This document shows, piece by piece, positions 4,115-49,316 of a stretch of 64,000 bases of DNA. Where the stretch lies: the NCBI GenBank assembly GCA_025558095.1, contig JAIVFI010000026.1, positions 124,001 to 188,000 on the forward strand. Reading direction: 5' to 3'. The notes beneath the pieces are model-generated. The model saw only the letters and a list, made by a program, of their open reading frames with translations, searched no databases and was not told the DNA's origin. Each line of letters opens with the position of its first letter. Position 1 is the first letter of the stretch. The translations under genes and the position numbers were made by a program. The DNA is from Hyaloraphidium curvatum SAG 235-1. Taxonomy: Eukaryota > Fungi > Monoblepharomycota.

Positions 4115-4820
4115 CGGACGGCCCGATGCCTTCGGTGCAGGTCCGCGACGATGGCGAGCAACCCCGGATCCACGGTGCTCGACACTCTCGGGTCCCCGAA
4201 CCCCGCGCGGCAGGGCTCGGCAAACACGGACTACACCTACACCGCGGGGAATGCCAACACGGAGTACGCCCCAGGGGACGAGCTTCTGGGTCAGGGTCGA
4301 GGGCACCACCGACTCGGTCAACTTCCCCGCGAGCAGCGCGGCCATAGCCCGCCACCGGCGCCGGTGCCTTAGCTGGAAACAGGTTCACGTGCAACTAGGG
4401 CACCACCTGGGCACCGTCAACTCCTTCCCGATCAACGGCGCCTGCCAGGTATCGGGTTGAATGTAAACGGGTGGCGCCCTGGTCCATGAGGGCGCTCCAA
4501 AGTGCATCCAGCGCCACGTAGTGCGGTGGGAGGGATTCGACGGGGGATCTCTGTACAATCTCTTCTGTGTGTATGGCGGCAGTGTCGACGATTATGCCCG
4601 TACTGGTGCAAGGGCCTCGGCGAGGACACCGTGGGCAGCGAGGAGACCTCTGGCGGCGACCTGCTTCCTTCGTGAGCAAGGAGCTCGGAGAAGGACCAGG
4701 GCCCAGCGAATTGCGAATGTGGGTAGGGGGAAGGTCGTGATGGACGAGGCCGCAGTGAAGACGTCGGGGTCGAGAAGTGGGCACGACGGTGGCACCGCGA
4801 CTCGGTCGGGGTTCCGCGCG
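4115..4820 (+). pseudogene. Degenerate copy 2 of the choice-of-anchor-R-like gene (5'-truncated) with downstream flank
   Basis: ADGPMPSVQVRDDG / SNPGSTVLDTLGSPNPARQGSANTDYTYTAGNANTEYA / GTSFWVRV...NSFPINGACQVSG* (stop 4460), spread over three frames. Flank 4650-4820 matches 340-460 (inverted) and 20560-20735. Confidence 0.75.
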
Positions 4821-4983
4821 AGGGAGGCAAGCGAAAGAGAAAGGGGCACCCATGCATGCGCTGCGCCGCCAAACCCCCCCATCGCGTTTTCCGGCGTCCT
4901 ACCGGTGGCTTTGACCCCCCGTTGCTCCGGCGTCGCTTTGTTAACGGCCCTCACTCCCAACCCCACTCGACCCCTCCCGGCCG

Positions 4984-7427
4984 ATGCCATGGCGGCCCCC
5001 GGTGCCGCCGCTGCTCGTCCGCGCCGCGGCGCTTAGCCGCCCCCGCGTTCCAGCCGCCCTCTGCCCGCCAGTTCTGCCGCCGGCGATGGGCAGCGGGCCG
5101 GCCGCCGCGCGGCTGCGGCGCGACATGAACGGCGTGGGCAAAATGTGGGGAAAGGGCGGCAAGCACAAACAGGCGAACACGGCAAAGAAGGCCGCCCGTG
5201 CGGGCGTCGATGGACTGCCGGGGCTGGACTCGCCGGGGGCTCTCTTGGAGGAGAGGCAACTGCCGGCGGACAGCGCGCCCCCGGAGCCCTCTCCCGCGGA
5301 ACTCGATGCTGCAGACGAGGCAGCTGCCGGCCAGGTCGACGCTCCGCCAGGGGCCACACCGGCCCTTGAGGAGCTGTTCATCGCCCTCGGCCGGGAGGAC
5401 TCGCCGCCGCGCGAGGAGCCCCCCGAGAACGTCGACCGCGCCTCCCGCTACTTCCCCGCCGAGGCCACCACCCACACCCGCACTCCCTACGCCTCTCTCT
5501 TCGCCGACCTCTCGGACCCCTTCCGCCCTCCGGTCCCCGGCCCCCCCGTGAATTTGCAGGTGGACAACCGGGCCCCGTGGCTCCCCCCCGGCCTCGACCT
5601 CCCCGCCGACCGCGCCTCGGCCTTGGACATCGAGCTTCCGCACCTCGCTGCGTTCCTGCTCCCCGACGAGCGCGAGCACGGCGTGCGGCTCGACGCCCTC
5701 GAGCGGCTGGAAAAGGCCGCGGGCAAGGCGGCTGCCGGGTACGAGTTCCGCGCGGGGGGTTCGTTCATGGCCGCCACAGGGTCGTGGGACGCCGACCTGG
5801 ATTGCGTCGCGGTGCCGCGGGGCCACCGTGCCGGATCGGACGGCGAGGAGATGCCGGACAAGATGCTGCAGAGCAGGGCGCTCGGCAAGATCATGAAGAG
5901 GCTGCGGGTCGCGGGGTGGGAGGCCAAGCTCATTTCCCGGGCCAGGGTGCCCGTTCTCAAGGTATACCCTGCTTTAGCTCACTGAACCGAAATCTGTGGC
6001 TCACCGGGTGTTGCCCCGCCTGGCAGATCGTCGACCCCGACACCCAGCTCAGGATCGACCTCACCGCGCTCCAGCCCTCCCTCCTCCGCTCCCTCCTCGC
6101 CACCCGGCGCCTCCTCTCCGCCGTCCCCGGCGCCCACCCCGCCGCCGTCTTCCTGAAGCGCTTCCTCCGCCTGCGCGACCTGCACGAGCCCTTCGAGGGC
6201 GGCCTGGGTGGGTACGCCTCGGTGCTGCTGGCGTGCTGGGCGGCGCGGCGCAACCCCCACCTCGGACCCGGAGGCGCGCTCATCTCCCTTCTCCGCCTCC
6301 TGGCGGGCCAACCCGATCCCGACTCGGGGCGACCGCTGTACTCCTCGGAGCTCTCCCTCTCCCCCCACCCGCCGCACCGCCCCCTCTCCCGCCCCTCCCG
6401 CGGCCCCCCCGGCCTGCGCATCTCGGACCCCGCGGACCCGGCCAACGACGCCGCGCGCGCCTTCAGGCAGCTCGCTCCCCTCCGCCAGGCCGCGGCGCAG
6501 GCGCTGTCGCTGATCGCCGGGTCGGAGGGCAGCCCCGCCGCGAGCGTGGTGCCGTGGTCGGCCGGGGAGCACCGGCGGCGGGCGGCGATGGACCTCCGCG
6601 AGGCGAGGGGCGGGTGGGACGGGGACGAGGTGCTGGTCCGGCCGGCGAAGCACAGGCCGAATGCAAAGGAGAGGAGGAAGGCGGCGAGGGCGCTGGCGCG
6701 GGAGGCGGCGGGGAGGCAGGGCGGCAAGCGTGGGCTGAGGGAGATTTCGAGGGCGTTCGACGAGCTGGACGAGGAGGAGGATGTGGAGGGGGGCGGGAGG
6801 AGGTTCAAGAGGACCAAGAGGGGAAAGGAGGCGTGGGACGAGATCGAGGCCGCGGTGAGGGAGCTCGAGGAGGCCAAGGGGGCCGTTGCGCTCCTGCCTG
6901 ACGAGGACGGGGACTCGGTGCCGTCCTCGGACGACGAGGCCCGGCCGAGCTTCTCAGGGATCGGCGCCCCGCGCAAACAAGGGAAGCCCCCCCGCCCACC
7001 CCGTGATTCGGGCTCGGACTCCGACTCCCCCCGCACCCGCGCAAAGCGGCCCCGTGCCCCTCCTTCCTCCCGGCAGCGTTTCACCTTCCGCGCCGACGGC
7101 TTCGACACCTTCCTCGACGACGCCGGGGCCGACGTCGCGCTGCGGTCGCCGGGGTACCGCGGCGAGGCGGTGCGGTTCGAGCTGCGGGGTGAGCGCCTTC
7201 CGTCGCGGGAGACGACGGGGAAGGGAGGGATGGACAGGGGCGGAAAGAAGGGCAAGGGCGGGAAGAGGGGGAGGGGTTCGGGTGGCGATGGGGAAGGGTG
7301 GGAGGGGAGGGAGGTGCCTCGTGGGAAGGCCAAGGCGGGCAAGGGGAAGCAGGGCACGAAGTCCGGCAAAGGTTTGGCGCCGCCGGCTTGGTCGACCGAC
7401 AGGCGCAGCGTCGGACCGAGGTATTGA
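4984..7427 (+). CDS. Non-canonical poly(A) polymerase / terminal nucleotidyltransferase (Trf4/Cid-like)
   Basis: Pol-beta NTase motif GGSF..TGSWDADLD, then ARVPVLK, intron ~5962-6026, IVDPDTQLRIDLT, LRDLHEPFEGGLGGY and LRISDPADPANDAAR (PAP-associated). Charged, Lys/Gly-rich C-terminus. Confidence 0.8.
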
Positions 7428-20834: not shown

Positions 20835-21191
20835 CGTGTCCCCAAATCAAGGAGCAGGATATGCGCGCACTTGGATCCGAGGTTGCAGATGCCCATCTAA
20901 AGCAACTGCTGATGCCACGATCACCTGGCGCGGAGCCTACAAGACGCACCCGCGCTCCCCTCTCCGGCGGGATTATTGTCGGCGCTGTCGTCTACGCCCG
21001 CTCCTGTGGGGAGTGCAGCGAAGTGGCCTTCGGGTGGGACCCGCCCCGCACGTCCGGGGCCGCCGCCGATGCTGATCCCGGCGGATGCCCAGATCAAAGA
21101 GCAGGATATACGCGCGCAGGCAGAGCGGAGATGGGAACCTATGATGTTGAACCTCCGATGCGATTGCTCGACAGGGAGAGAAGAAAAGTGA
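20835..21191 (+). repeat. Fragmentary duplications: exon 2/intron 2 of the 19621 gene plus a short direct repeat
   Basis: 20985-21083 matches 19760-19857 (VVYARSCGECSEVAF vs VVFSRSCGACSEAAF, plus intron start). ATCAAGGAGCAGGATATGCGCGCA (~20846) matches ATCAAAGAGCAGGATATACGCGCG (~21093). Confidence 0.7.
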
Positions 21192-21503
21192 ACGTGAAGC
21201 CCTCCCTCCACCCCATTCGTCACTTGGCACGGCGGGCGAGCCAGGAGGTCCCAGAGGGCGATATCAACCAGCCTTGTGTTCAACCATCAGGCTGCCTAGG
21301 GAAACCGGTGGTTCGGCGCGGCGGCCAAGTCTGGCTGTGCCATCCCCGAAGTCTCCCCAGCCGCCCGGGCCGCCGTCGCCGCCGGCGCGGGCGGTGCCGT
21401 TCAGGCGCGGGCGGTGCTGACTTTCCGCCGTGCCCCGCTGACTTCCGGCCTCGAATCGACTTTCGCCGGGATCCCCGGTGGATTCCGGGGTGTTCCGGGC
21501 GGA

Positions 21504-24500
21504 ATGCGTGTCTCGGCGTGCGCCGCCATCGCGCTCGCGGCGGCGCTGCTCGCGGCGGCCCGGCCGGCCGCTGCCCACTCCTGGATCGTCTGCACGGATT
21601 ATCGCGAAGAGGTGGGCCGCTACGGTGTCCCTCCGTGCCATTGGGGCGGATTCCGACGCGTTCATGCCCTCCGGCCTCGCTCGCCCGGGTCGCCCGGCCT
21701 TCTCATTCCGGTCACCAGAACGGCTACCTCTGGAACCAGACAAAGTGCGCCGCGTGGCCGCGCGATGCCGCAAACTACGTGTACAACAAGCCTTTCGGCG
21801 CGTCGCTCGGCTACAACCAGCAGAGTGGGTCGCGAGCTGCCGGCGGCCGAGTGACCGCGCTGACCGCGTGCCGCTCCGCAGGCCCCGTGTGCAGGCCGAG
21901 AGATGGCGTCACCGACTGGCCCAAGGCGACCTACCGCCCCGGTCAGCGTGTTTGCCTCGTCTGTGGGTCGCGGCCACCCCCGCTCTCTCCACCCGCCCGC
22001 CTGACCCGCGACGTCCAGGGCCCTCGATGAACCACGTCAACTGCAACATCACCGGCTGCAACCAGTGGCTCTGGGACAACGGCAACCACGTCGAAGCGTC
22101 GCCGTACGAGCTGCCCGACCCGCAGGGCGTCTACGGCACCTGGCCCATCAAGGTCGCCGACATGGGCATCTCGTCGCGCGGGTACGCTTTCACCCCCGAG
22201 TTCCCGCGGCCGGGGTTCCAAAACTGCCCCAATTTTGATCCGTCGGGGGTCGGGAGGGTGTTTCCGGTGGGGGACCAGAGCGGCACCGCGTTCTGCTCGA
22301 ACTGCTTCGAGGTGCCGACCAACATGTCCGAAGGCCTCTACGTCTTCAGGTGATGCTCCCCTCCCCCGAACGTGTCCATTTCCTCTAACCGTGACGCCGC
22401 AGATGGCACTGGGAGTTCAACCCTGGCGAACATTACTACTCATGTTGGGACGCCAAGATCGAAGCCGGCACCCCTCCTCCCGCTCCCACCACCTACACCC
22501 TCCCCAGCACCGCCGCCCCAACCACCACGGTCCCGCCTCCCGCGCCTCCACTAGCCACGGGAGCGACCACCACGGCCGCGCCGGCGGCGCCGACGAGCTT
22601 CCCGGCCAGGTTCAGGTGGCTGCAGTACGGCACCTCGGGATCCAGCGTCAACGGGGAGGTCGAGGTGCTCCCGCTGACGCAGTCGCTGAACGGGTTCACC
22701 GTCGTGTTTGACGTTATCCCCGGCTTCACGGTGCGTCGCTCCGCCCGCGGATCCAGAGGGCGAAAAGCTGACCTCTGCGCTCCGCCTCAGATCGCCACCT
22801 CTAGCATATACAACTGCGGCTCCGTCTCGGCCTCGGGCAGCACAATCAGCTGCGTGCTCAACCCCGGCTCCTGGAACGGCCAGATCGCCGTCAACGCCGT
22901 CGGGCGGGCCTTCGGCTTCTGGGCGCAGCGTAGTTTCACGGGTTCCGGCAGCGTGACTTACCTCCGCGAGGCGGCAACCAACTGGCGCCTCGTGATCGGC
23001 GGCGTCACCTACCCGGTGCCGATGGTAGACCCGAACGATCCCCTCGTACCGACGTTGATGCCGTCGGCGACCGCGGGCACTGGGGGCGCGGCGGTGCCGA
23101 CAACCACGGCGGCGGCGGGAGGGACGGCGCCGACGGGGACTGCGTCGGTGCCGCCGATCAGGCCGGGCAAGTTCGTCGGGGTCAGGGGGACCGAGTTCGT
23201 CATCGACGGCTGCCCGTTCTCCTTTGCCGGCGCCGGTGCCTGTGAGCCCTCCGCGATTTAAAGCCTCGCCCGGCAAGATTTCTGACCCGCGTCCCACCGA
23301 CAGACTACTTCAACTACCAGCCCCCCGCGGTCATCGACGCCGCCCTCGACCTCGCCGTAACCTCCAACCTGCGGGTCATCCGCACCTGGGCCTTTCGGGA
23401 GGAAGCCTGGTTGTCCGCCGCGCCGGGCGGCGGCCTGCGTGTGGACAACTCGACGACGAACGGGGTGGGGGTGCTCGATTACGGGATCAAGGCTGCGAGG
23501 GACAGGAACGTGAGGCTGGTCATGGTGCTGACCAACAACTGGAAGGATTTTGGGGGCTGCGACGTGTGGACCGCGGCCTGTGGGTCTCTGCCGATGGCGC
23601 GCTCCTCCGCCGCCGAAAGCTGATCGGATGCGCGCCGGGTAGATGGCGGCACCACCCACGCGGACTTCTACACCCGCACGCAGGTCAAGGAGGCATTCAA
23701 GGGCTATATCGACATCGTCGTCAACCGCGTCAACTCCCTCACCGGCGTCGCGTACAAGGACGACCCGACCATCATGGCTTGGGTGGGCTCGTCTCCTGCG
23801 CGCCTCTCTGCGTCAGCAGCTCACTGCCCGTCGTCCCGCTCAGGAACTAATGAACGAGCCCCGGTGCCAGAACGGCGGCTCGCTGGGCTTCTCGGCCACG
23901 TGCAACGCAGCGACCATCACAGCCTGGGTCGCCGAGATGTCGGCCTACCTCAAGTCGCGCGTGCCGAACCAGCTCGTGGCCGTGGGCGACGAGGGGTTCT
24001 ACAACGGCGCCGGGACGCTGCCGTACGCGTACCAGAACAACGACGGGGTGGATACCGAGGCGTACCTGGCCCTCAGCTCGATCGACTTTGGTTGGCCCCC
24101 TCCTCCGGCGGGCGGCGCCATCCTCGGCTGACTCCGAATCCGCGCCAGGAACCTTCCACATGTATCCCGCCCCCTGGGGCTCCGGCGCCAACGAGGGCCC
24201 GTGGGGCGTCGACTGGATCCGCGCGCACGGCGCGACGGGCCTGCGGTTCGGCAAGCCGATGCTGTTCGAGGAGTACGGGAGCAAGGACCGCACGCAGAGG
24301 GCGGGGTGGTACGCGAGCTGGATGGCCGAGGTGGAGGCGCAGCCGGCGGTGGCGGGGGATCTGTTCTGGATGATCTCGGGAGGGAACTTCCCCGACTGTT
24401 GGTTCGCACCGACTGCGGAGAGATGGGCCGCTGACGATCTTGGTTCGCGACAGACGACGGGTACACGCTCATGGGCGCCGAGGTCACGACCCTCTTTGCC

Positions 24501-25600
24501 GCCCACGGCGCGCGGATGCTCGCCCGCGGGGCGTGCCTCAACACCACCACCACCTCGACGGCGACCCCGGGCCCGACGGCCACCGGCCCGACCACGACTT
24601 GGGAAACGTCCACCTCCCGCTCACGCACCCGCACGTGGACCCGCACGACGACCACGTCCGGCCCGCCCGCGCGACTCTCGTGGCTGCAGTACTCGGCGGG
24701 CACGACCAACGTCAACGGCGAGGTGCGCCTGGAGAACATCGGCACCACCCCGATCGACGGCTACACCGTGACCTGGACCGTCGACCCCGGGTGGGAGGTC
24801 CGCCCCGAGTGGGTGAGCAACTGCGGCACGTTTTCGCCGCCGGCGGGGACCAACAGGACGGCGGTATGCACGGTCAACGCGGGGGCGTGGAACAGCGGGG
24901 TGCCGGTGGGAGGGATCAACAGGCCCATGAACCTGTTCATGCAGAGGATCGGGTCGGGGAACGGGGCGACGTCGTTCCTGAGGCAGGGTGGGTGGCGGCG
25001 TCGCGGCGCAGCTCGTGGCAGATTGCTCATCCGCGACCTGCAGCCGGGTACGACTGGACGGTCATCGTGGGCGGGGTCAGCTACCCGGCCCAGATGGTGG
25101 ACCCCAACGATCCCGGCGGGCCGGCGGGGCCTGCAACCACGGCGGCACCCCCGGCTCCGCCTCCGCCTCCGCCGCCGACCTCGACTCGCGTCACCACGGC
25201 GGTCCCGACGAGCACGCAGGCCCCGACGACGACGCCGGCTCCCACGACCAGGCCGCCGACGACGACCGTGGCGCCGGCGCCTGCGACAACCACCGTTCCC
25301 GCGGCGGTACCCACCACGGAGCAAGCGTCGACCACCCTCCCCCCTCCGATCACCCTCCTCCGCCGCAGCACCACCATTCGCGCCACCACTACCGTCTCTG
25401 CGACGTGCCCCGACCTCTCCCCCACCCGCGTCCCCGGCCCCGCATCTGTGGAATGCGATCTCTTCGCCGCCGACTGCACGCGGTTCGCTGCGGCGTGCTC
25501 GGCTCGTGCGACGGCAGGGGTGCCGGCTGTTTCGGCGGAGCGTTGCGCGTGGCTGGCGGACTTCTGCGCGGGGTTGGCGGCGAGCTGCCCGATAGCTTGA
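21504..25600 (+). CDS. Secreted multimodular polysaccharide-active enzyme: LPMO-like domain, CBM2-like, GH5 beta-mannanase, CBM2-like, Cys-rich tail
   Basis: Signal peptide ending PAAA then His. About 10 introns. GH5_7-like motifs RVIRTWAF, LTNNWKDFGG, YKDDPTIMAW/ELMNEPRC (acid/base), TFHMYP, KPMLFEEYG (nucleophile). Thr/Pro linkers separate the modules. Confidence 0.85.
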
Positions 25601-25989
25601 GCGGGGTTGGACGGGGATGCGGATGAGGCATAGATGGGCATTTGGGCAGTCCGCGGCAATTGGATTGGACTCGGTCAAAAGAGGCTTATGGCGACAATAC
25701 TGTCTTGGGTCGAGCGTCTCCTTGGGTGAAGATCCGTGGTCCATTCTCGGTCGGAGTTTTCGCGATGAGGTTCTGGAGCGCCCAAAGCTTGGCGGGGAGT
25801 CCCTGTATCGCGGACTGAAGGCCGACTGCTAATGCCGGGGCGGGACAGGCGCAAGACCCCGCTGCCGTCGGATTCGTAGGAGGAAGCGTGTGCGGGACAC
25901 TCGCTTTTGACTACTGTCCAATCTTGATTCCAACACGGCGGACATGCAGACACGGCAAACAGTCATCCCACTCCGACCCTCCAAGCCAC

Positions 25990-27202
25990 CTAGTACCCGC
26001 TCGGCAGCTTCCCCTCCTTGGTGAAGCTCTTCTCCGTCCTCGCCCTCAGCCACTCCCCCGCCGTGAGCACCTTGTCCGCCGGCGCCATGGCGTCCCTGCT
26101 CGCGCCGCTGGCATCCTCGCCCAGCATCGGGCTCGGGATCGGGGACAGCGGGACGTCGAAGCCGGGGCGCAGGAAGTAGCCCACCGAGAAGCGCCGGCGC
26201 TCGGCGTTGCCGGGGATGGGGGACGGGACGACGCGGTGCAGCGTGGAGCGGAGGTAGCCCTGCGTCCAGAACTGTTGCGAGCAGGAGAACAAGGTCAGGT
26301 ACCGCGATGCCGACCCGGGACGAACCCCTCACTTGAAGGATGTCGCCCAGGTTCACGATGCACCCGCCCTCGACCGGCGGCACGTCGACCCATTTCCCGC
26401 CGGGCCGCTGGATCTGCAGGCCCCCCGTGCCGTCCTGGAACAGGCACGTCACGCTGCCCCAGTCGGTGTGCGCGCCGATCCGGATGCCGCGCTCGGCCGC
26501 GCTGCGGGGCTGGCCGGGGGTGCCGGATTCGGGGGGGTAGTGCAGGATGCGGAGGGTGTCGCCGCTGGGGACGGGGTAGGCGTGCATGGGGTCGAAGTAG
26601 AGGTGGCCGCCGGCGGACTCGGGGATCCTGTTCCGGGGCGAGGAAGGTCAGAATGGAGCAGGGCGGCGAGTTGGGCGGACTACCCACTCCATGCCCAGCG
26701 CAATGATCCTCAGCAGCCGCCTCCCCAGCTCATGCATCTCTCGGCTGGCCCTCTCGACCAGCGCCTTCTTGCGGTCCAGGATCTCGGGCAGCGGCCGGTC
26801 GCTACCGGGCTCCCCGGGGACGAACTTGGCAAAGTTGAAGAGCTCCTTGTTGTCCGAAATGCCGCTCGGGTCGAGCGTCTGGCCGCCCACGCCCATGTAC
26901 CCGATGTGCTCGTGGCCCATCGTGTACGGTTTCTTCTGGGTATCGAAGTCCGCGCCGAGGTAGTACTCCTCGGCCAGGGCGAACATGCCCTCGAGCGCCT
27001 CCTTGGACACGCCGTGGCCCTTGACGTAGAGGAACCCCGTCTCGGTGGAAGCGTTGAGGACGCGGCGCGCGATCTCGCGGGCCTTGGCGGGGTCCCTCGC
27101 GGGGTCGAAGGCGGCGATGTCGACGAGCGCCAGCGGGAGGTTGTCGCCCGGAGAGGGCGCGGAGACGTGCGCGGCAACCTGCGCGACGCGGGCGGCGGCC
27201 AT
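25990..27202 (-). CDS. 2-oxoglutarate/Fe(II) dioxygenase (IPNS/DIOX-like)
   Basis: [38 protein letters not shown] (HxD), [22 protein letters not shown]. Two introns. Confidence 0.9.
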
Positions 27203-36532: not shown

Positions 36533-39500
36533 TCAGTCCGACGACTCGGCCCGGATGACCGTGTTGCCCGCGCCGAAATCATCGTCCGCCCTTCCCCCCT
36601 TCACGTCCGCCCCCTCGTGGCCGACTTCGCCCCCCACGACCTCCTCAATCAGGCTGAGGGCTTCCGCGTTCGCCGGCCCGCCCGGCGGGATGACGCCCGA
36701 GTCCAGGCCGAGGAGGTACTTTTCCAGCGCGGAGCGGAACCGCGGGAACGTGAGCGGCTTGGTCAGGTAGTCCGTCATTCCCGCCTCGAGGCACTTTTCC
36801 CGGTCCCCCCGCATGGCGTGGGCAGTGAGCGCGATGATGGGCACACCAGGGTCGCCGGCCTCCCCCGCCCGGATCCTCCGCGTGGCCTCGAGCCCGTCCA
36901 TGACCGGCATCTGCACGTCCATCATCACCAGGTCGAACGTCCTGGCGCGCAGCAGCTCCAGGGCCTCGGCACCGTTGTGCGCCGCCTCCCCCCTGGCGCC
37001 GGCCTTGCGGAGCAGACCCTGGGCGACCTGCTGGTTGACCGGGTTGTCCTCCACCACGAGCACCACGAAACCCGCCAGCGCGGCCTTTCGCGCGGCCTCC
37101 TCTGCGTCCTCGGGGCGGTGCTTCCTCGACGGCGGTGGCGTCCCCGACACCGGGCTGCCCCTGCCGTCGCCGACCAGGTGCGCCGTGCAGTCCTGCAGGT
37201 GGATCTGGCTCACGGGCCGCGGCAGGACCGCCGTCACCGCCACGCCGGGCACCGTGGGCGGCGGTTCCCTGAGCGTCACCGGCCTCACCAGCACGATCTC
37301 GGGCCTCCCCACCCTCCCGGCCTTGCCCGCAATCGCGCGGAGAAACTCCATCCCCACCCTGTCGGGCGCCGTGTCCTCGACCACCACCATGCTGAACGGA
37401 TCCCGCGCCCTGCGCGCCTCGACCAGCGCCGCCACCGCGTCCGCCGGCGACCCCGCCCACGCCGATCGCAGCCCCAGCGACGCCAGGATCTCGGTCGCCG
37501 CCTCGCGCTGCGGCTCGGACCGCTCGAGGAGGAGCACCCTCGCCGCCCTGTCCGACACCCCCGCCCCCGCGGCCCCCTCGTCGGGCCGGGCCGCGACCCG
37601 CACCTCGAACTCGAACAGCGAGCCGACCCCCTCCTCGCTCTCGAGGCGGATGCTGCCCCCCATGAGCTCCACCAGCTCCCTGCATATCGCCAGGCCGAGC
37701 CCCGACCCGCCGTACCGCCGCGTGACCGACGCGTCGACCTGAACAAACTGGTTGAACAGCTTGTCCCTCGCCCGCTCCGGGATCCCGATCCCCGTGTCCC
37801 TCACTTGGAACCTCAGCCCCCCCGGCGCCGGGAACGCCCTCACGCTCACCTCCCCCCGCTCGGTGAACTTGATCCCGTTGGCCACGAGGTTGGCGAGCAC
37901 CTGCCTCAGCCGGCCGGGATCGCCGTGCAGCTTCCTCGGCGCGTCGGGGGCTGCGGAACACGAGAGCTCGATGCCCTTGTTGTGCGCGCGCGGGGCGAAG
38001 GAGGCCGCGAGGTCCGAGAGGAGGGTGGGGAGGTCAAAGTCCAGGCGCTCGAGCTCGACCTTGCCGGCCTGGACCTTGGAGAGGTCGAGGACGTCGTTGA
38101 TGAGGGCGAGGAGGGATTCGGCCGAGGCGCGGACGGTGTCGGCGAGCTGGGTCTGCTCGGGGGAGAGGTCGGTGTCGAGGAGGAGGCCCGAGAGGCCGAT
38201 GACGCCGTTGAGGGGGGTGCGGATCTCGTGCGACTGGAAAGAGGGGAACGTGAGGCGAGCTCGGGCATCGGGGCGGCCGCGACGAACCATGTTTGCGAGG
38301 AACTCGGCCTTGGCCTTGGCCGACGCCTCTGCCGCCGTGGCCGCCGCCTCGGCCTTCTTCCTCGCCTCCTCCAGCATCTCCTCGTACCGCTGTTGCGCCG
38401 TCGCGTCCCTCGTCGTGGTCAGGAGCACCCTGTGCCCCTCGAGGCGGAAGCTCGACGCCGTGCTCTCGCCCCAGAACTCGGACCCGTCGCGGCGGCGGTG
38501 CCGCGCGCGGAAAACCTGCAGGCATCCATCCGTGCGGACGAGCTCGAGGAAGCGGCGGGTGTCCTCGTCGGAGGAGAAAAAGTTGCCGGCGACCTCGCGG
38601 AAGGGGCGGCCGAGGACCTGGTCCCGCGGCAGGCCGGCGAGCCGCTCGAAGCCCGAGTTGACCTCGAGCACGGTGCCGAGCACGAGGTCCACCAAGTAGA
38701 TCGCATCGGTCGAGGCCTCGAAGGCCAGCGTGAACTTTTGCCGGCTGGCGGCGAGCTGCGCGCGGATGTGGCGGTGGCGGAGGGTCTTGCCGTATCTGGG
38801 GGTGCGGCACGTGGTAAGAAAGTCGGACCCGGCGATCTCGAAGGACGTACGCGACGACGGCGACGGCGCCCCAGAGGAGGGCGAAGAAGGCGGCGTTGAT
38901 GAGTGCCGGGGAGAGCGCCGAGGCGGCGTAGGTGACGGCAAAGGTGACGGCGACACCGATGGCCCAGGTGGCGAGGATCACGGGCAGGTCGAGCACGTTT
39001 GCGGCGAGCACGCAGGGGGCGGCTGCCATGGTGATGAACGCCGCCGAGACGGGCTGCAGCGTTTGGTACATGATGCCCGAGGCGATGACAGCCGCGCAGC
39101 CTGGCCACATGAGCGTGTACGGGCCGAGGGTGCTGCGGGTGAGCAGCCACAGCGTGGCGGTCGAGGCCAGCAGCGCGACGGCGACGGTGGGCCACAGGCG
39201 CTGGCCTGGAGGAGCCATGGCGACCATGACCACGACTGCGGCCGAGGCGCAGGTGCCGACCACCACGGCGGCCAGCCGCAGGATTGCCTTTGCTCCATCG
39301 TCGAAGATCGACTGCCCCAGCTCGCCGAACGGGGAGTTGGGGTCGTCCGAGGGCAGCGCCGGCGTGGGCGGCCCGGTGCCGATCAGGGTCAGGCTCCTGT
39401 CCACCCGCTCGCCGAGGTACGCGACGCCGGGGTGCGAGGGGCGGCGGTGCGAAGGCGAGGCGTCGGCGGCTGCGGCGGAGGCGTCCAGGTTGTGCGGCCG

Positions 39501-45165: not shown

Positions 45166-47470
45166 ATGGCCCCGTCGTGGCCGATTCCCCTCCCCTCGGA
45201 CCGCCTTCCCGACTCTGCCGGCGGCGGCCCGCGATTCGTCTACAACGCCATCGACGCCGTCGAAGCGGACGCCCGGGACCTGGCCACGATCAAGCGCGGC
45301 GAGCGGCTCGTCTCCCTGCAGCTCGAACGCTGGAGCCAGGGCAAGTTCCACATCCTCGAGTTCATGCTGGACTGGCTCACTGTGAAGCCCGAGGCGGAGT
45401 GCCTGTGGTTCCGCAGGAGGACGTACTCGTACCGCGAAGTGAACCAGATATCGAACCGCATCTTCCACTATTCGAGGGACGTCCTGGGGCTCCAGAAGAA
45501 CGGCATTGCCGGGATGCTGCTTCAGAACTGCCCCGAGTTTGTGTTTCTCCAGGTCGGATTGGCCAAGCTGAAAGGTGGGCAGCGGCGACGCGGGAAAGTA
45601 GTCACGGCTGACCAGACACCACCCAGTCGCCCAAGCCTGGCTCAACTACAACTTGAGGGGGGCCAGCTTCCTAGGATGCCTCGCAATCGCTGCCCCGCCC
45701 GTCCTCTTCTTCGAGACCGCGACCGCCGGCCACATCATCGAGGCCATGGACGGCCTCCTCGCCGCGAAACCGCCCGTGAGGCTGGTCCTGTTTGACAACG
45801 AGGACGGGGCCGCGAGGATCGTGCCCGAGATCGAGAAGCGCGGAGGCAAGGTGGACGTGATCACGGAGCGGTCGCTGGAGGCCTATTCGGACAGCGAGCC
45901 CGACCCCGAGATCAGGAGGAAGGGGACGACGGCCAACGACCTCAACGCCCTCATCTGTGAGACAAGTTGCTTCCTCCCGGTTGGCGGAGACTGACGAGAG
46001 TTACAGATACTTCGGGGACGACTGGGCTGCCCAAGGCTACTCGCTCCCGCTTCTCCAGCGGAGGTGCCGCAGCCTTGTCGTGGTGCCTGACCGGGTACCT
46101 GAACGAGCGGGATCGGTTCTACCAGCCGCTTCCTCTTTTCCACGCCAGCGGCCAGATTGGCCTCGCTACCTCCTTCATCCTCGGGATCCCCTTCATCAGT
46201 GAGTAGTATCGACTGGGCGCGCCGCCCCGTTCCTGATCCCATCACTTTCAGTCGCCCGCAAGTTCTCCACGAGCGGCTTCTTCCCGGAAGCAATCGAAAG
46301 CCGTGCCACCGCCTTTCAGTACATTGGCGAAGGTTGGTCCCGCGCTTCCTCTTTCCCACCGCGAAGCTGAAACTCCTCCTAAGTCAACCGCTACCTCTAC
46401 GCCCTCCCCCCTTCGCCCAACGACCGCGCCCACAAGATCCGGACCGCCATCGGCAACGGCATGAGGCCCGACATCTTTGCCGGCTTCAAGGAGCGCTTCG
46501 GCATCGACACCATCCTGGAGTTCTGTGGGTCATCATGCTCCTCATTTGGCCGTCCCTGACGATGTCCGTTTTTGCAGACGGCGCCTCGGACGGCAACGTC
46601 CTCACCCAGATCCTCCACACCCCCACTTCCCCGCCCGAAGCCCTCGGCGCCGTCGGCTTCTACGGCCCGCTGTACGACCAGCTCGTCGGCGCCGTCCGGA
46701 TCGTCAAGTTCGACGTGCAGAGCGAGATGCCCGTGCGGGACGCTGACGGGTTCTGCATCCCGTGCGCGTGGGGGGAGACGGGGGAGGTGCTGGGAAGGCT
46801 GCTGTACAAGGACGATCCGGCGAACAAGCTCGGGGTGGAGGGGTTCGGGGGCTACGAGGGGAACAAGTCCGCGTCGGACAAGAAGGTTGGTGTTCTCGGA
46901 TTTGGCATCTTGGCTGGTCTTTGAAGCGCGCGACGTCCGCAGATACTCCACGACTGCTTTGCTAAAGGCGACCGGTGGCTGCGGATGGGCGACCTGCTCA
47001 GGAGAGACTACCCTGGCTGGCTCTACTTCGTCGACAGGATCGGCGACACGTTCCGCTGGAAGGGCGAGAACGTCAGCACGCAGGAGGTCGGCAACGTGGT
47101 GGCCTCCCACCCCGCCGTGCTGGACGCCAACGTGTACGGCGTCCAGGTGCCCAGCATGGACGGGCGGGCCGGGATGGCGCTGCTCGTGGTCGACCCCGGC
47201 AAGAAGGGCCTCGAGGCGACGCTGGAGGACCTCGGGCGGTTCGTGGACGAGCGGCTGCCGCACTACGCGGTGCCCAAGTTCCTGCGGGTGGCGCCCGAGA
47301 TCGAGCTCACGGCGACGTTCAAGAACCGCAAGGTCGAGTACCAGAAGGAGGGCTTCGACCCGCAGATCGTCGGGGATCCGATGTTCTGGTTCGACCCGGA
47401 TCGCAAGACCTACGTCCGGTTCGGGGAGCGCGAGCACGCGTTGGTGGCCGGTGGAAAGGCTAGATTGTGA
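45166..47470 (+). CDS. Very-long-chain acyl-CoA synthetase / fatty acid transport protein (FATP-like)
   Basis: I/YTSGTTGLPKA AMP-binding motif, PLPLFHASG, AIGNGMRPDI, YFVDRIGDTFRWKGENVSTQEV, DGRAGMA. Multiple introns. Confidence 0.92.
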
Positions 47471-47612
47471 TGCATCATGGAAACATGATAGATTGGTGCC
47501 GCTCGGGGACGAGGAGAGTCAGATGCCGCAAGGACGGCGGCAGCATAGCACCCGGCGTTGCCCCGCTGTCTTTGCAGGGTTCCGCGCCCGCCAACTCTTC
47601 AACTCCGCCACG

Positions 47613-49316
47613 ATGGGAGCTCGTTCCCTGCTGCTAGTCGTCGCTTCAACCCTTTTCGTTGCGTTCGCGGGCGCGATTGCCCCTCCCGCCGCGCGCGGTG
47701 CGCCAGCGGAGGTCGGGGGGCCATTTCTTGCGCCAGACGACACCTCTTCTCTCGCGGCGGCAGGAGACGGCGTGACGCTCCGGAACTTTGTTGCTGACGG
47801 ACCTCGCGAGCCGCTGTTAGCGGCGGAGCCTCCCGACGGGGCGCTGGCCCGCCGACAGCTCGCCCCGACGCGCACCGTCTTCCGCACAAAGACGGTGTTC
47901 CGCACAAAGACGGCGACGCTGCGGACGTGCACCGCGACCGTGCGGAAGACAATTACGCGCACGCTGTCGCGGACGACCCGGACGCTCGTCTCGACAAAGA
48001 CCGTAGTCAGCACCTCGATGGCCACCTCGACCCTCCTGAGCACTTCCGTGTCGACCACGACCAAGACGGTCGTTGCAAGTCCCACCTCTACATCCACTGG
48101 CCCCCCTTTCCCGACCGGAAACGTCGTCTTCTTCCACCCCGACGGAATGGGCGCCAACACTTGGACCGCCGTCCGGTTGCTGCACCGCGGCCCGGACAAC
48201 CGCACCAACTGGGACCTCATGCCCGCCACCGCGCTCTACTCGGGCCACCTGAAGGACTCGATTGCCTCCACGTCCCACGGCGGCGCGACGGCCCACGCGT
48301 ACGGCATCCGCGTCGCCGCCGACTCGTTCGGGATGGACGGCGGGACGCCGATCAGGCAGCTCGGCGGCGGGGAGGGCGGGATCGCAGCCGAGGCGATGCG
48401 GCGCGGGCGCTGGGTCGGCCTCGTGCAGTCCGGCGCTGCGTACGAGCCCGGTACCGCCGCGCACGTGGCTTCCGTGGCGAGCAGAAGCAACTACGACCTG
48501 ATCACGGCGCAGGTCGTCGCATCGGGGGTGAGGGTGCACATGGCGGGCGGCGAGAAGCACTACCTGCCCAACAACGCGCCGGGGAGGTTCGGCGTGGGGA
48601 GGAGGCAGGACGGCCGCAACCTGACCAACGAGCTGGTGCAGGCCGGGTACACGATCGTCTACACCAAGTCAGAGCTGGATGCTCTGCCGCCGGACGTGAC
48701 TAAAGTCTGGGGGATCTTTGCCCGCGACCATACCTTCTTTGCCAACACAGAGGCCGCAAACGCGGCGGCAGGCATCACCGACCTGTACCTCCCCACGGCC
48801 CCCACGATCGGCGAGATGTGCGCCGCCGCTTTACGGATCCTCTCACGCGCCCCCGCGGGCTTCTTCCTCGTCGCGGAGGAGGAGGGCACGGACAACTTCG
48901 CCAACGCGAACCACGCCTCCGGCACCCTCGAGGCCGGGAGGCGCGCCGACCTCGCGCTCGGAGTGCTGCGCGAGCATGCGGAGCGGACGGGGGACACGCT
49001 GGTGATCACCACCTCGGACTCGGATGCGGGGGGCATGCTAGTGATGCCGTCGGGGGCGGGGGTGGTTCCCGCGACCGAGGGCAACGGGGCACCGATGGAC
49101 GGCGTGGCGGGGGCGGGGAGCACGGCGTTCCTGGCGGCGCCGGATGCTGCAGGGAGGAGGCATTCGTTTGCCATCTCTTGGGCTGGGTTCGGCGACGGTG
49201 CGGGAGGGGTGCTGGTGCGCGCCGCGGGATTCAACAGCTGGTTGGTGCAAGGCGTGGTCGACAACATCGGGGTGTACAAGATCATGTACAGGACGATGTT
49301 GGGCGTGGATATTTAA
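47613..49316 (+). CDS. Secreted alkaline phosphatase with Thr-rich N-terminal linker
   Basis: Intronless. Signal peptide, Thr-rich stalk, GNVVFFHPDG, STSHGGATAHAYG, EPGTAAH, FFLVAEEEGTDNFANANH, VITTSDSDAGG. Confidence 0.85.
   Translation: MGARSLLLVVASTLFVAFAGAIAPPAARGAPAEVGGPFLAPDDTSSLAAAGDGVTLRNFVADGPREPLLAAEPPDGALARRQLAPTRTVFRTKTVFRTKTATLRTCTATVRKTITRTLSRTTRTLVSTKTVVSTSMATSTLLSTSVSTTTKTVVASPTSTSTGPPFPTGNVVFFHPDGMGANTWTAVRLLHRGPDNRTNWDLMPATALYSGHLKDSIASTSHGGATAHAYGIRVAADSFGMDGGTPIRQLGGGEGGIAAEAMRRGRWVGLVQSGAAYEPGTAAHVASVASRSNYDLITAQVVASGVRVHMAGGEKHYLPNNAPGRFGVGRRQDGRNLTNELVQAGYTIVYTKSELDALPPDVTKVWGIFARDHTFFANTEAANAAAGITDLYLPTAPTIGEMCAAALRILSRAPAGFFLVAEEEGTDNFANANHASGTLEAGRRADLALGVLREHAERTGDTLVITTSDSDAGGMLVMPSGAGVVPATEGNGAPMDGVAGAGSTAFLAAPDAAGRRHSFAISWAGFGDGAGGVLVRAAGFNSWLVQGVVDNIGVYKIMYRTMLGVDI

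Follow-up and report, generated by a model that had tools for sequence, protein, structure and literature searches.

A secreted 1135-residue protein of Hyaloraphidium curvatum joins a predicted LPMO-like domain of an unclassified family to a GH5 mannanase

The gene occupying positions 21504-25600 on the plus strand of the window (the whole stretch of 64,000 nucleotides of Hyaloraphidium curvatum DNA analysed here) encodes a secreted CAZyme of 1135 residues with two catalytic modules, secretion being assigned via a predicted signal peptide. Its N-terminal domain, which starts with the residues HSW, is a member of an unclassified family found eukaryote-wide, related to the Pfam family DUF7492 and, according to fold modelling of a homologue, LPMO-like, with AA10 and AA11 as the nearest relatives among solved structures. 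Regarding the function, we lean, if only slightly, towards a tethered pair of LPMO-like oxidase and mannanase equipped with CBM2-like modules, whose intramolecular synergy would serve saprotroph nutrition.

Three-frame translation combined with splice-site reading resolved the locus into 12 exons and 11 introns, all 11 of GT-AG type and 53-107 nt long, giving a CDS of 3408 nt with no internal stops (Table 1). Transcription was assessed using a public run, presumed to be RNA and available in the form of assembled contigs. One contig of 3000 letters aligned to 21541-25185 without a single mismatch and with uniform depth; all 11 introns are spliced out of it, the junctions coincide exactly with the predicted ones, and it includes both the N-terminal domain and the second CBM, together with every module boundary in between. 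Another contig corresponds to 25254-25685 and comprises the Cys tail, stop codon and 3′ UTR, while the gap between the two (25185-25254) falls in linker 4, sequencing adapters being present at contig ends. The fusion is independent of any splice choice, as two exons each bridge two modules: linker 1 shares exon 5 with the final strand of the His domain and the beginning of the first CBM2-like module (CBM-A), and linker 2 shares exon 6 with the end of CBM-A and the beginning of GH5. The architecture proposed by the earlier note, in which one continuous spliced frame leads from an LPMO-like domain with a putative His brace through a first CBM-like module to the GH5 mannanase and on through a second CBM-like module to the Cys tail, is transcribed as one spliced RNA, and an in-frame stop between the modules, searched for in the entire 1135-aa frame, was not found. 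An artefact merging two adjacent genes (one for the His domain with a CBM, the other for GH5 with a CBM) via read-through or a chimeric contig appears highly improbable. It is true that assembly can in principle join neighbours and that the two H. curvatum paralogues end after one CBM; however, the stop-free run of 1135 codons, the confinement of linkers 1 and 2 each to one exon and the uniform zero-mismatch contig over all module boundaries and 11 splice junctions speak against it, as do the lack of any Met with signal peptide ahead of the GH5 domain in frame translations of the gene and an independent metagenomic relative with the same order, His domain then GH5, in an intronless gene.

Table 1. 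Exons, modules and selected motifs of the H. curvatum gene (positions within the window)
Feature	Position	Strand	Remark
Exons 1-4	21504-21611, 21719-21824, 21882-21962, 22019-22349	+	
Exons 5-8	22403-22730, 22791-23241, 23304-23579, 23643-23782	+	
Exons 9-12	23844-24090, 24149-24397, 24454-24987, 25044-25600	+	
Start codon and signal peptide, 24 residues	21504..21575	+	predicted cleavage between AAA and H
HSW domain, predicted LPMO-like, aa 25-231, ~207 aa	21576..22469	+	exons 1-5; family alignment, homologue model
Introns inside HSW domain	21612-21718, 21825-21881, 21963-22018, 22350-22402	+	confirmed by RNA contig
Mature N-terminal His1 (HSW...)	21576-21578	+	
Second invariant His, within MNHV	22027-22038	+	
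E-x-Y..C motif of HSW domain	22428-22445	+	
Linker 1, 43 aa, 88% T/P/S/A	22470..22598	+	inside exon 5
CBM2-like module A, aa 275-402	22599..23042	+	intron 22731-22790
Linker 2, 41 aa	23043..23165	+	inside exon 6
GH5 endo-beta-1,4-mannanase domain, aa 444-796	23166..24524	+	exons 6-11; PDB phmmer per exon
GH5 acid/base, NEP	23853-23861	+	
GH5 nucleophile, in FEEYG	24265-24279	+	
Linker 3, 48 aa, T/S/R-rich	24525..24668	+	
CBM2-like module B, aa 845-974	24669..25114	+	intron 24988-25043
Linker 4, 97 aa, T/P/A-rich	25115..25405	+	
Cys-rich C-terminal tail, 64 aa, and TGA stop	25406..25600	+	

Attribution of the hydrolase as a mannanase, already made from the letters of the gene, was corroborated by phmmer searches of PDB carried out per exon: among solved structures the GH5 exons match solely endo-beta-1,4-mannanases (12 of 12 matches for each exon, E-values from 7e-21 to 1e-6), among them 4qp0 (7e-21), 8gf3 (1.7e-13) and 6tn6 (6.6e-9). 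Pfam PF00150 gives a weak match on GH5 fragments. The H. curvatum mannanase is of fungal type, and we take the matched enzymes to represent subfamily GH5_7. Both catalytic glutamates are in place, the motifs NEP and EEYG being intact and, together with F-H-x-Y-P, common to RmMan5B (4qp0), Trichoderma Man5A (1qno) and the H. curvatum domain. GH5 of this type is present in the genome as a single copy. As far as is known, fungal GH5 mannanases are single-domain proteins or carry CBM1; in contrast, the H. curvatum mannanase has a CBM2-like module on either side and the LPMO-like domain ahead of it.

The two CBM-like modules are paralogous to each other (BLASTP E=2e-10), and CBM-A was also recovered in the family search of the organism's own genome. 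For the second module (CBM-B), the Pfam CBM_2 profile gives E=4.4e-4 and 21 bits, which is under the cut-off of 24; the best PDB matches are CBM2 modules with E=0.008 (1exg, Cex CBM2a) and 0.035, and by Atlas features 18 of the 30 top clusters are CBM_2 (score 0.90, 172-179 features in common). From these comparisons, both modules are probably divergent CBM2.

For the N-terminal domain, Pfam returned no match on exon pieces, phmmer of exon 4 against PDB yielded only spurious repeats (designed "Cake" proteins), and a word search with exon 4 among candidates restricted to 167-530 aa gave nothing. Its relatives form a sparse family distributed eukaryote-wide, with 81 matches among 1.84 billion (1.84e9) representatives and members in chytrids, oomycetes, Heterolobosea, ochrophytes, tunicates and bryozoans. 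In each of the 42 complete homologues the HSW motif is close to the N-terminus, at residues 10-82 and mostly at 14-31, and its histidine, His1, is invariant (42/42), as are the second His within (K/M)NHV (43/43) and the Tyr of Y-x-x-C (45/45); the position two residues before this Tyr is D, E or Q in 30 homologues out of 45 and E in the H. curvatum protein. Partner modules found in the family are CBM1, CBM49 or CBM2, with one member carrying a GH5 cellulase. A 5-sequence HSW alignment retrieved eight metagenomic loci, and GH5 was encountered in the flanks of none of them. Many members share with X325 proteins an end made up of a Ser-rich stretch and a hydrophobic C-terminus resembling a GPI signal; such an end is absent from the H. 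curvatum protein and its two paralogues, all three of which have CBM2-like modules. The uncharacterised, mostly ascomycete DUF7492 (PF24320) is matched by 22 of 56 HSW-family proteins (best E=6.2e-9) and represents the nearest cluster to the HSW domain by language-model features, but the H. curvatum exon and the paralogue pieces stay below its cut-off of 27 bits, the best value being 13.8 for the C-terminal piece of the paralogue C5. When the genome was searched in six frames with PF24320, neither this profile nor the controls gave a match, which makes the outcome uninformative; the literature search revealed no paper on DUF7492.

The fold was modelled for a homologous segment (residues 14-210 of the metagenomic protein P0001, 38-42% identical) standing in for the H. 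curvatum domain. The model is confident (pLDDT 88.9, pTM 0.88), and in an exhaustive structure search with it ranks 1-24 are all occupied by LPMO or LPMO-like proteins, the next one, at 6.7, having an unrelated fold; this supports for the family the LPMO-like character assumed for the domain before any fold was available. Over two structure searches Z ranges from 11.4 to 7.6 against every LPMO family represented. In the exhaustive search it is 11.1 for AA10, 10.5 for AA11, 9.5 for both AA15 and AA9, 9.4 for X325, 9.3 for AA13, 8.4 for AA14 and 7.6 for AA16. Structural alignments start with residue 1 of the model and, in most rows, with the first residue of the matched chain, which we take to be the copper-binding His1 of the mature enzyme (e.g., His28 of CBP21 or His35 of ScLPMO10C). 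When a profile of 46 HSW-family sequences was compared with PDB, it aligned only with AA11 chains (E=8.7e-4 to 0.02, about 38 C-terminal residues), and both the second His and the Tyr are inside the aligned stretches, presumably corresponding to the copper-site residues of AA11. The family appears to combine a predicted LPMO fold, an immunoglobulin-like beta-sandwich, with strictly conserved His1, second His and Tyr, and we infer that the two His and Tyr, residues 25, 104 and 220 of the H. curvatum precursor, may form a copper histidine brace.

Resemblance to AA11 LPMOs (AoAA11, 4mah/4mai; AfAA11, 7p3u and 9exj) extends to the N-terminal His, the second His after the Y-x-x-G-Q strand, the D-x-G turn and the C-terminal pattern G-x-Y-x-x-W-x-W...E-x-Y-x-x-C, and the folds match with Z of 10.2-11.0 and rmsd 2.6-3.3 over 128-136 residues at 15-18% identity. 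However, the sequence match covers the roughly 38 C-terminal residues and not the full length, the HSW family has a start (HSW...CTDY) and a motif (GFQNCP) of its own, and known AA11s are chitin-active. A review names X278, not GH5, as a module associated with AA11 (PMC10154629). AA10 LPMOs give the best fold scores (Z 11.1-11.4), but their sequence similarity is undetectable with the family profile. LaX325 (6ibh) shares the LPMO-like fold and the N-terminal His (Z 9.4, rmsd 2.7, 120 residues), whereas X325 proteins have a GPI anchor and an extra Asp ligand and are devoid of CBMs and of polysaccharide activity (PMC13353379); the H. curvatum protein departs from the X325/BIM1 profile by its two CBM2-like modules, GH5, predicted Cys-rich hairpin end and absence of an anchor signal. 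AA18 was considered as a home for the HSW domain and rejected as a different, bacterial enzyme type, which we take to be CelOCE; in the literature searched, no instance of "AA19" mentioned together with LPMO was found.

Among full-length relatives, two metagenomic proteins, P0001 and P0082, of 641 and 696 aa and named "endoglucanase" in their source, come closest to the N-terminal domain, with identities of 38% to exon 4 and 42% to the C5 paralogue. They repeat the order of signal peptide, HSW domain, S/T linker, GH5, S/T linker and a tail with C-x6-C-x6-C. Nevertheless, their GH5 is of cellulase type (the PDB endoglucanases 5hpc, 2.8e-83, and 1gzj, 2e-78) and unrelated at subfamily level to the H. 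curvatum mannanase, CBM2-like modules are lacking, and the genes are called as uninterrupted ORFs on metagenomic contigs; BLAST gave no alignment between the H. curvatum tail and that of P0001, the likeness being restricted to Cys spacing. Among characterised systems, Jd1381 of Jonesia denitrificans (AA10-CBM5-GH18), whose full-length form is more efficient than the separate domains, follows a similar logic of N-terminal LPMO, CBM and hydrolase, differing in its bacterial origin, chitinase partner and LPMO family; only one bicatalytic LPMO-hydrolase, bacterial, had been characterised by 2023, and AA10-CBM2 is a common bacterial pairing (PMC10154629). The opinion of the earlier note that eukaryotic LPMOs are usually stand-alone or carry only CBMs is weakened by AA15 fusions with GH9 or GH18 in eukaryotes (PMC8615602); given these precedents, the architecture counts as rare.

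The favoured mode of action may be envisaged as follows. Removal of the signal peptide would turn the His of the ~207-residue beta-sandwich domain into the N-terminus of a chain in which T/P-rich linkers join the HSW domain, a CBM2-like module, the GH5 mannanase, the second CBM2-like module and the helical hairpin. With two His and Tyr acting as a copper histidine brace, the HSW domain could oxidatively nick the surface of an insoluble beta-1,4-glycan, candidates being glucomannan-coated cellulose microfibrils or the crystalline mannan that occurs in detritus from algae or plants. Kept on this surface by its CBM2-like modules, the enzyme would bring its second activity to bear: the tethered mannanase would hydrolyse the loosened chains, the outcome being intramolecular LPMO-hydrolase synergy serving saprotroph nutrition. 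A benefit of tethering has its precedent in Jd1381. To our knowledge, no LPMO is active on pure or crystalline mannan. The mannanase had been proposed as a pointer to the substrate of the N-terminal domain, and it does hint at it, albeit weakly: because the same domain is elsewhere joined to GH5 cellulase, CBM1 or CBM49, the presence of GH5 does not settle what the substrate is. A bolder version, that HSW constitutes a new copper-LPMO AA family across eukaryotes which in this protein is tethered with GH5 on crystalline mannan or mannan-coated cellulose, is offered only tentatively; if true, eukaryotes would have in this protein their first natural bicatalytic enzyme of LPMO and mannanase, which might also be the first mannan-acting LPMO.

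It is also conceivable that the protein is a modular beta-mannanase whose HSW domain is LPMO-like and non-catalytic, being engaged in copper binding or scavenging of X325/Bim1 type or in targeting by means of surface binding or disruption. The Z of LaX325 trails those of the best LPMOs by about 2 at most, many family members combine GPI-signal-like C-termini with the lack of CBM, our literature search found no activity data for any HSW-family member, and, according to a review, polysaccharide oxidation cannot be deduced from a histidine brace (PMC13353379). We nevertheless hold a non-catalytic role to be rather unlikely, given that the H. curvatum protein and its two paralogues possess CBM2-like modules and no GPI-like end, that relatives carry CBM1, CBM49 and in one case a GH5 cellulase while X325 proteins are free of CBMs (PMC13353379), and that at sequence level it is AA11, not X325, with which the family profile aligns, E/Q-x-Y..C being part of the match.

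Activity towards the fungus's own wall or a developmental structure, i.e., remodelling instead of degradation of food polysaccharides, was among the options raised earlier and has lost much of its appeal: since H. curvatum is a monoblepharid fungus, not an alga, such a role is less likely for a beta-1,4-mannanase, and we know of no fungal wall in which beta-1,4-mannan is a structural polymer. As to the organism, an HSP70 exon shows 100% identity to H. curvatum, with Gonapodya following at 92%, and a green alga, to which high GC and short introns had pointed, was rejected on this ground. Moreover, GH5 is most like secreted mannanases degrading plant mannan, the presence of CBM2-like modules points to crystalline beta-glycans as binding targets, and the protein has no membrane anchor. 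These considerations make own-wall remodelling distinctly improbable, even though the GPI-like anchors of family members speak for roles at the cell surface, the Cys-rich tail could serve as an attachment element, and fungal LPMOs with wall-integrity roles are reported for Cryptococcus (PMC10166503).

With its fusion of modules, the protein lends itself, as found in nature, to testing whether the HSW domain stands for a new LPMO family. LPMO families were mostly discovered singly, and each broadened the known substrate range; the HSW family is uncharacterised, yet at the level of sequence it lacks none of the hallmarks of a copper site, and its fusions to mannanase, cellulase, CBM1, CBM2 and CBM49 provide hints to natural substrates. 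Activity, if it were demonstrated, would support a new AA family and would provide biomass conversion with a compact design that unites oxidase and hydrolase. The protein also bears on the feeding of early-diverging aquatic fungi on algal and plant wall debris.

As for the C-terminal tail, no second copy of it was found in the genome. It contains seven Cys with the core spacing C-x6-C-x6-C-x15-C-x6-C-x6-C, and in a single-sequence AF2 model it adopts a helix-loop-helix shape with helices of pLDDT >90, which predicts a disulfide-stapled helical hairpin.

The window gene lies in a region of ~64-74% G+C where coding segments of the + strand switch frames in three-frame translation, and splice-site reading resolves it into 12 exons separated by 11 GT..AG introns of 53-107 nt each. 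Its coding sequence (3408 nt, 1135 codons) runs to a terminal TGA and contains no in-frame stop, neither between the modules, where the earlier note had proposed to look for one in the splice form, nor elsewhere. The joined exons were used for the frame check and coordinate mapping; searches, family scans and folds took single exons or homologues from databases as input. Transcript data came from assembled contigs of the only public run that includes this stretch, its kind guessed as RNA, examined over 20900-26100. A 3000-letter contig matches the gene with 0 mismatches, and each of the 11 introns is missing from it precisely at the predicted splice sites; since a genomic read could not skip introns, spliced cDNA of this gene is present in the run. 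The same contig bridges each module boundary as far as the second CBM2-like module (CBM-B), while another one takes in Cys tail, stop codon and 3′ UTR; the gap between them corresponds to the T/P-rich linker 4, and the contig ends carry adapter sequence. Linker 1 lies within exon 5, flanked there by the final strand of the N-terminal domain and the beginning of the first CBM2-like module (CBM-A), and linker 2 lies within exon 6, between the last part of CBM-A and the first GH5 strand, so that modules are joined inside single exons whatever the splicing. The continuous frame linking the His domain to GH5, as initially read from the sequence, is thus confirmed; its division into two separate genes is very unlikely, and an artefact of the gene model is a minor alternative. 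Over the downstream neighbour gene, RNA-derived contig depth reaches ~184, far above that of the window gene, contig depth being no gauge of expression.

Coordinates of the window gene products, transcript contigs and related or neighboring loci
Feature	Sequence	Position	Strand
3000-letter transcript contig	window	21541-25185	
Second transcript contig	window	25254-25685	
Cys tail	window	25406-25597	+
Stop codon TGA	window	25598-25600	+
Signal of downstream neighbour	window	25946-26100	
Long ORF, hybrid histidine kinase (PAS, HisKA, HATPase_c, receiver domain)	window	36536-38956	-
Long ORF, alkaline-phosphatase domain protein	window	46572-49313	+
Paralogue L006	G000:C5	~25.0-26.7 kb	-
Paralogue L007	G000:C17	~191.1-192.9 kb	+
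L020, tandem CBM2-like modules	G000:C33:106500-116000	~4260-5115	-

The N-terminal domain, starting with HSW in the predicted mature form, gave no real match when its exons were searched against Pfam and PDB sequences or by words. A full HMMER search over 1.84 billion cluster representatives, with the longest stop-free piece of an HSW paralogue as query, returned 81 proteins at E<=1e-3 (top identity 42%). Members of this family begin with H-S-W-[VIL]-x-C-[TA]-D-Y near the N-terminus behind a short leader, share internal motifs K-N-H-V with invariant His and G-F-Q-N-C-P, and end in W-x-W-x-F-N...Y-x-x-C-W-[ED]-A. His1 (42/42), the second His (43/43) and Tyr (45/45) are invariant; two residues before the Tyr, 30 of 45 sequences have D, E or Q, and the window protein, which retains all nearly invariant positions, has E. 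E/Q-x-Y is the second-sphere and axial-Tyr motif of AA9 and AA11. AA11 chains were the sole matches of the family profile at the sequence level (E=8.7e-4 to 0.02), the alignment taking in the second-His stretch and the C-terminal E-x-Y..C motif. Uncharacterised Pfam DUF7492 is matched by 22 of 56 members, and no paper was found on DUF7492, on the HSW family or on LPMOs of this fungal class. Named sources comprise two chytrids, an oomycete, Acrasis, an ochrophyte alga, a tunicate and a bryozoan; two metagenome contigs with an HSW gene (Ga0209770_10000239, JGI25922J50271_10000679; 21-23% G+C, one of 32.7 kb) belong to a very AT-rich organism or possibly a large virus.

For fold assignment, residues 14-210 of metagenomic P0001, the closest full-length homologue of the window domain, were modelled by AlphaFold2 from a 46-row alignment with confident scores (pLDDT 88.9, pTM 0.88). 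Top PDB matches found by Foldseek were all LPMOs, aligned by VIA-align with Z 11.4-9.2 and rmsd ~3 Å over 130-150 residues. These alignments start at residue 1 of the model, and most of them also at the first residue of the chain, which we take to be the copper-binding His1 of mature LPMO. Exhaustive search over 48,161 representative chains placed only LPMO or LPMO-like proteins at ranks 1-24 (Z for AA10 11.1, AA11 10.5, AA15 9.5, AA9 9.5, X325 9.4, AA13 9.3, fusolin 8.9, AA14 8.4, NIS1 8.0, AA16 7.6), below which Z falls to 6.7. Based on these fold matches of the homologue and the AA11-limited profile matches, the domain is predicted to have the LPMO fold and to belong to an unclassified family, which is nearest to AA11 and AA10 and qualifies for membership in neither; the LPMO-like character ascribed to it earlier is supported via this homologue.

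The GH5 domain proved to be the mannanase anticipated in the earlier note, with both catalytic glutamates (acid/base in NEP, nucleophile in FEEYG) intact and PDB matches of exons 7, 9 and 10 limited to endo-beta-1,4-mannanases (best exon-wise 4qp0 7e-21, 8gf3 1.7e-13, 6tn6 6.6e-9); exon 9 has no second genomic copy, and no other mannanase of this type occurs in the genome. CBM-A and CBM-B, ~128 aa each and mutually paralogous, look like divergent CBM2 by sequence: the Pfam CBM_2 score is 21 bits, under the cut-off of 24, top PDB sequence matches are CBM2 modules, and 18 of the 30 nearest Atlas clusters are CBM_2 (score 0.90). Such modules form a small family within the genome. The L020 gene carries two in tandem, 46-50% identical to module B, preceded by a Cys/Trp-rich secreted N-terminal domain and a very long S/T linker. 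The Cys tail (C-x6-C-x6-C-x15-C-x6-C-x6-C) is modelled from single sequence as helix-loop-helix with helices of pLDDT >90, where Cys residues of each helix would share one face.

Both genomic paralogues consist of signal peptide, HSW domain, linker and one CBM2-like module, directly past which the C5 copy ends; their intron positions differ from those of the window gene in the HSW domain and are common in the CBM. Metagenomic P0001 and P0082, labelled "endoglucanase" at source, combine HSW domain, S/T linker, GH5, S/T linker and 6-Cys tail, but their GH5 is of cellulase type (2.8e-83 to endoglucanases), unlike the window mannanase, with which it is alignable at the NEP motif and nowhere further. 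Two different GH5 subfamilies have become joined to the HSW domain. Tails of both independent fusions have C-x6-C-x6-C spacing, and BLAST detected no similarity between the window tail and the P0001 C-terminus. Since no GH5 occurs in the flanks of eight metagenomic HSW loci, the fusion is rare. Other family members bear CBM1, CBM49, CBM2 or TSP1/EGF-like modules. Many C-termini have a Ser-rich stretch followed by a hydrophobic end resembling a GPI signal (P0005, P0011, P0016, P0020, P0030, P0073 and others), which suggests a cell-surface subgroup beside the CBM-bearing secreted one.

The most likely working model combines oxidase and mannanase: CBM2-like modules would anchor the secreted enzyme to insoluble beta-1,4-glycan, the putative copper domain would nick its surface oxidatively, and the tethered mannanase would hydrolyse mannan or glucomannan thus exposed. 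By established LPMO chemistry (PMC10952591), an LPMO domain functions only at the N-terminus, the free amino group of His1 being a copper ligand; the HSW domain of the window protein is N-terminal. The main rival, in which the HSW domain is a copper or binding module akin to X325 and has no catalytic role, seems less likely to us. Remodelling of the fungus's own wall is a minor alternative to the oxidase-plus-mannanase model. In the one characterised bicatalytic LPMO, AA10-CBM5-GH18, the full-length enzyme beats its separate parts in efficiency (PMC10154629). The idea that the GH5 partner points to the HSW substrate is weakened: because relatives pair HSW with cellulase and cellulose-type CBMs, we consider cellulose or mannan-coated cellulose at least as likely a target as pure mannan.

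LPMO-hydrolase fusions are already known in bacteria, as the earlier note held; eukaryotic LPMOs, in its view usually stand-alone or CBM-only, include AA15 fused to GH9 or GH18 (PMC8615602). Fold family and GH5 mannanase are likewise known kinds, and what is new is the combination of an unclassified LPMO-like family with mannanase and CBM2-like modules in a fungus. The source, formerly taken for a colourless alga, is a monoblepharid, an early-diverging fungus with a genome of 31.9 Mb in 55 contigs; an HSP70 exon elsewhere in it is 100% identical to the Hyaloraphidium curvatum hsp71-like protein, after which Gonapodya prolifera (92% identical) is nearest.
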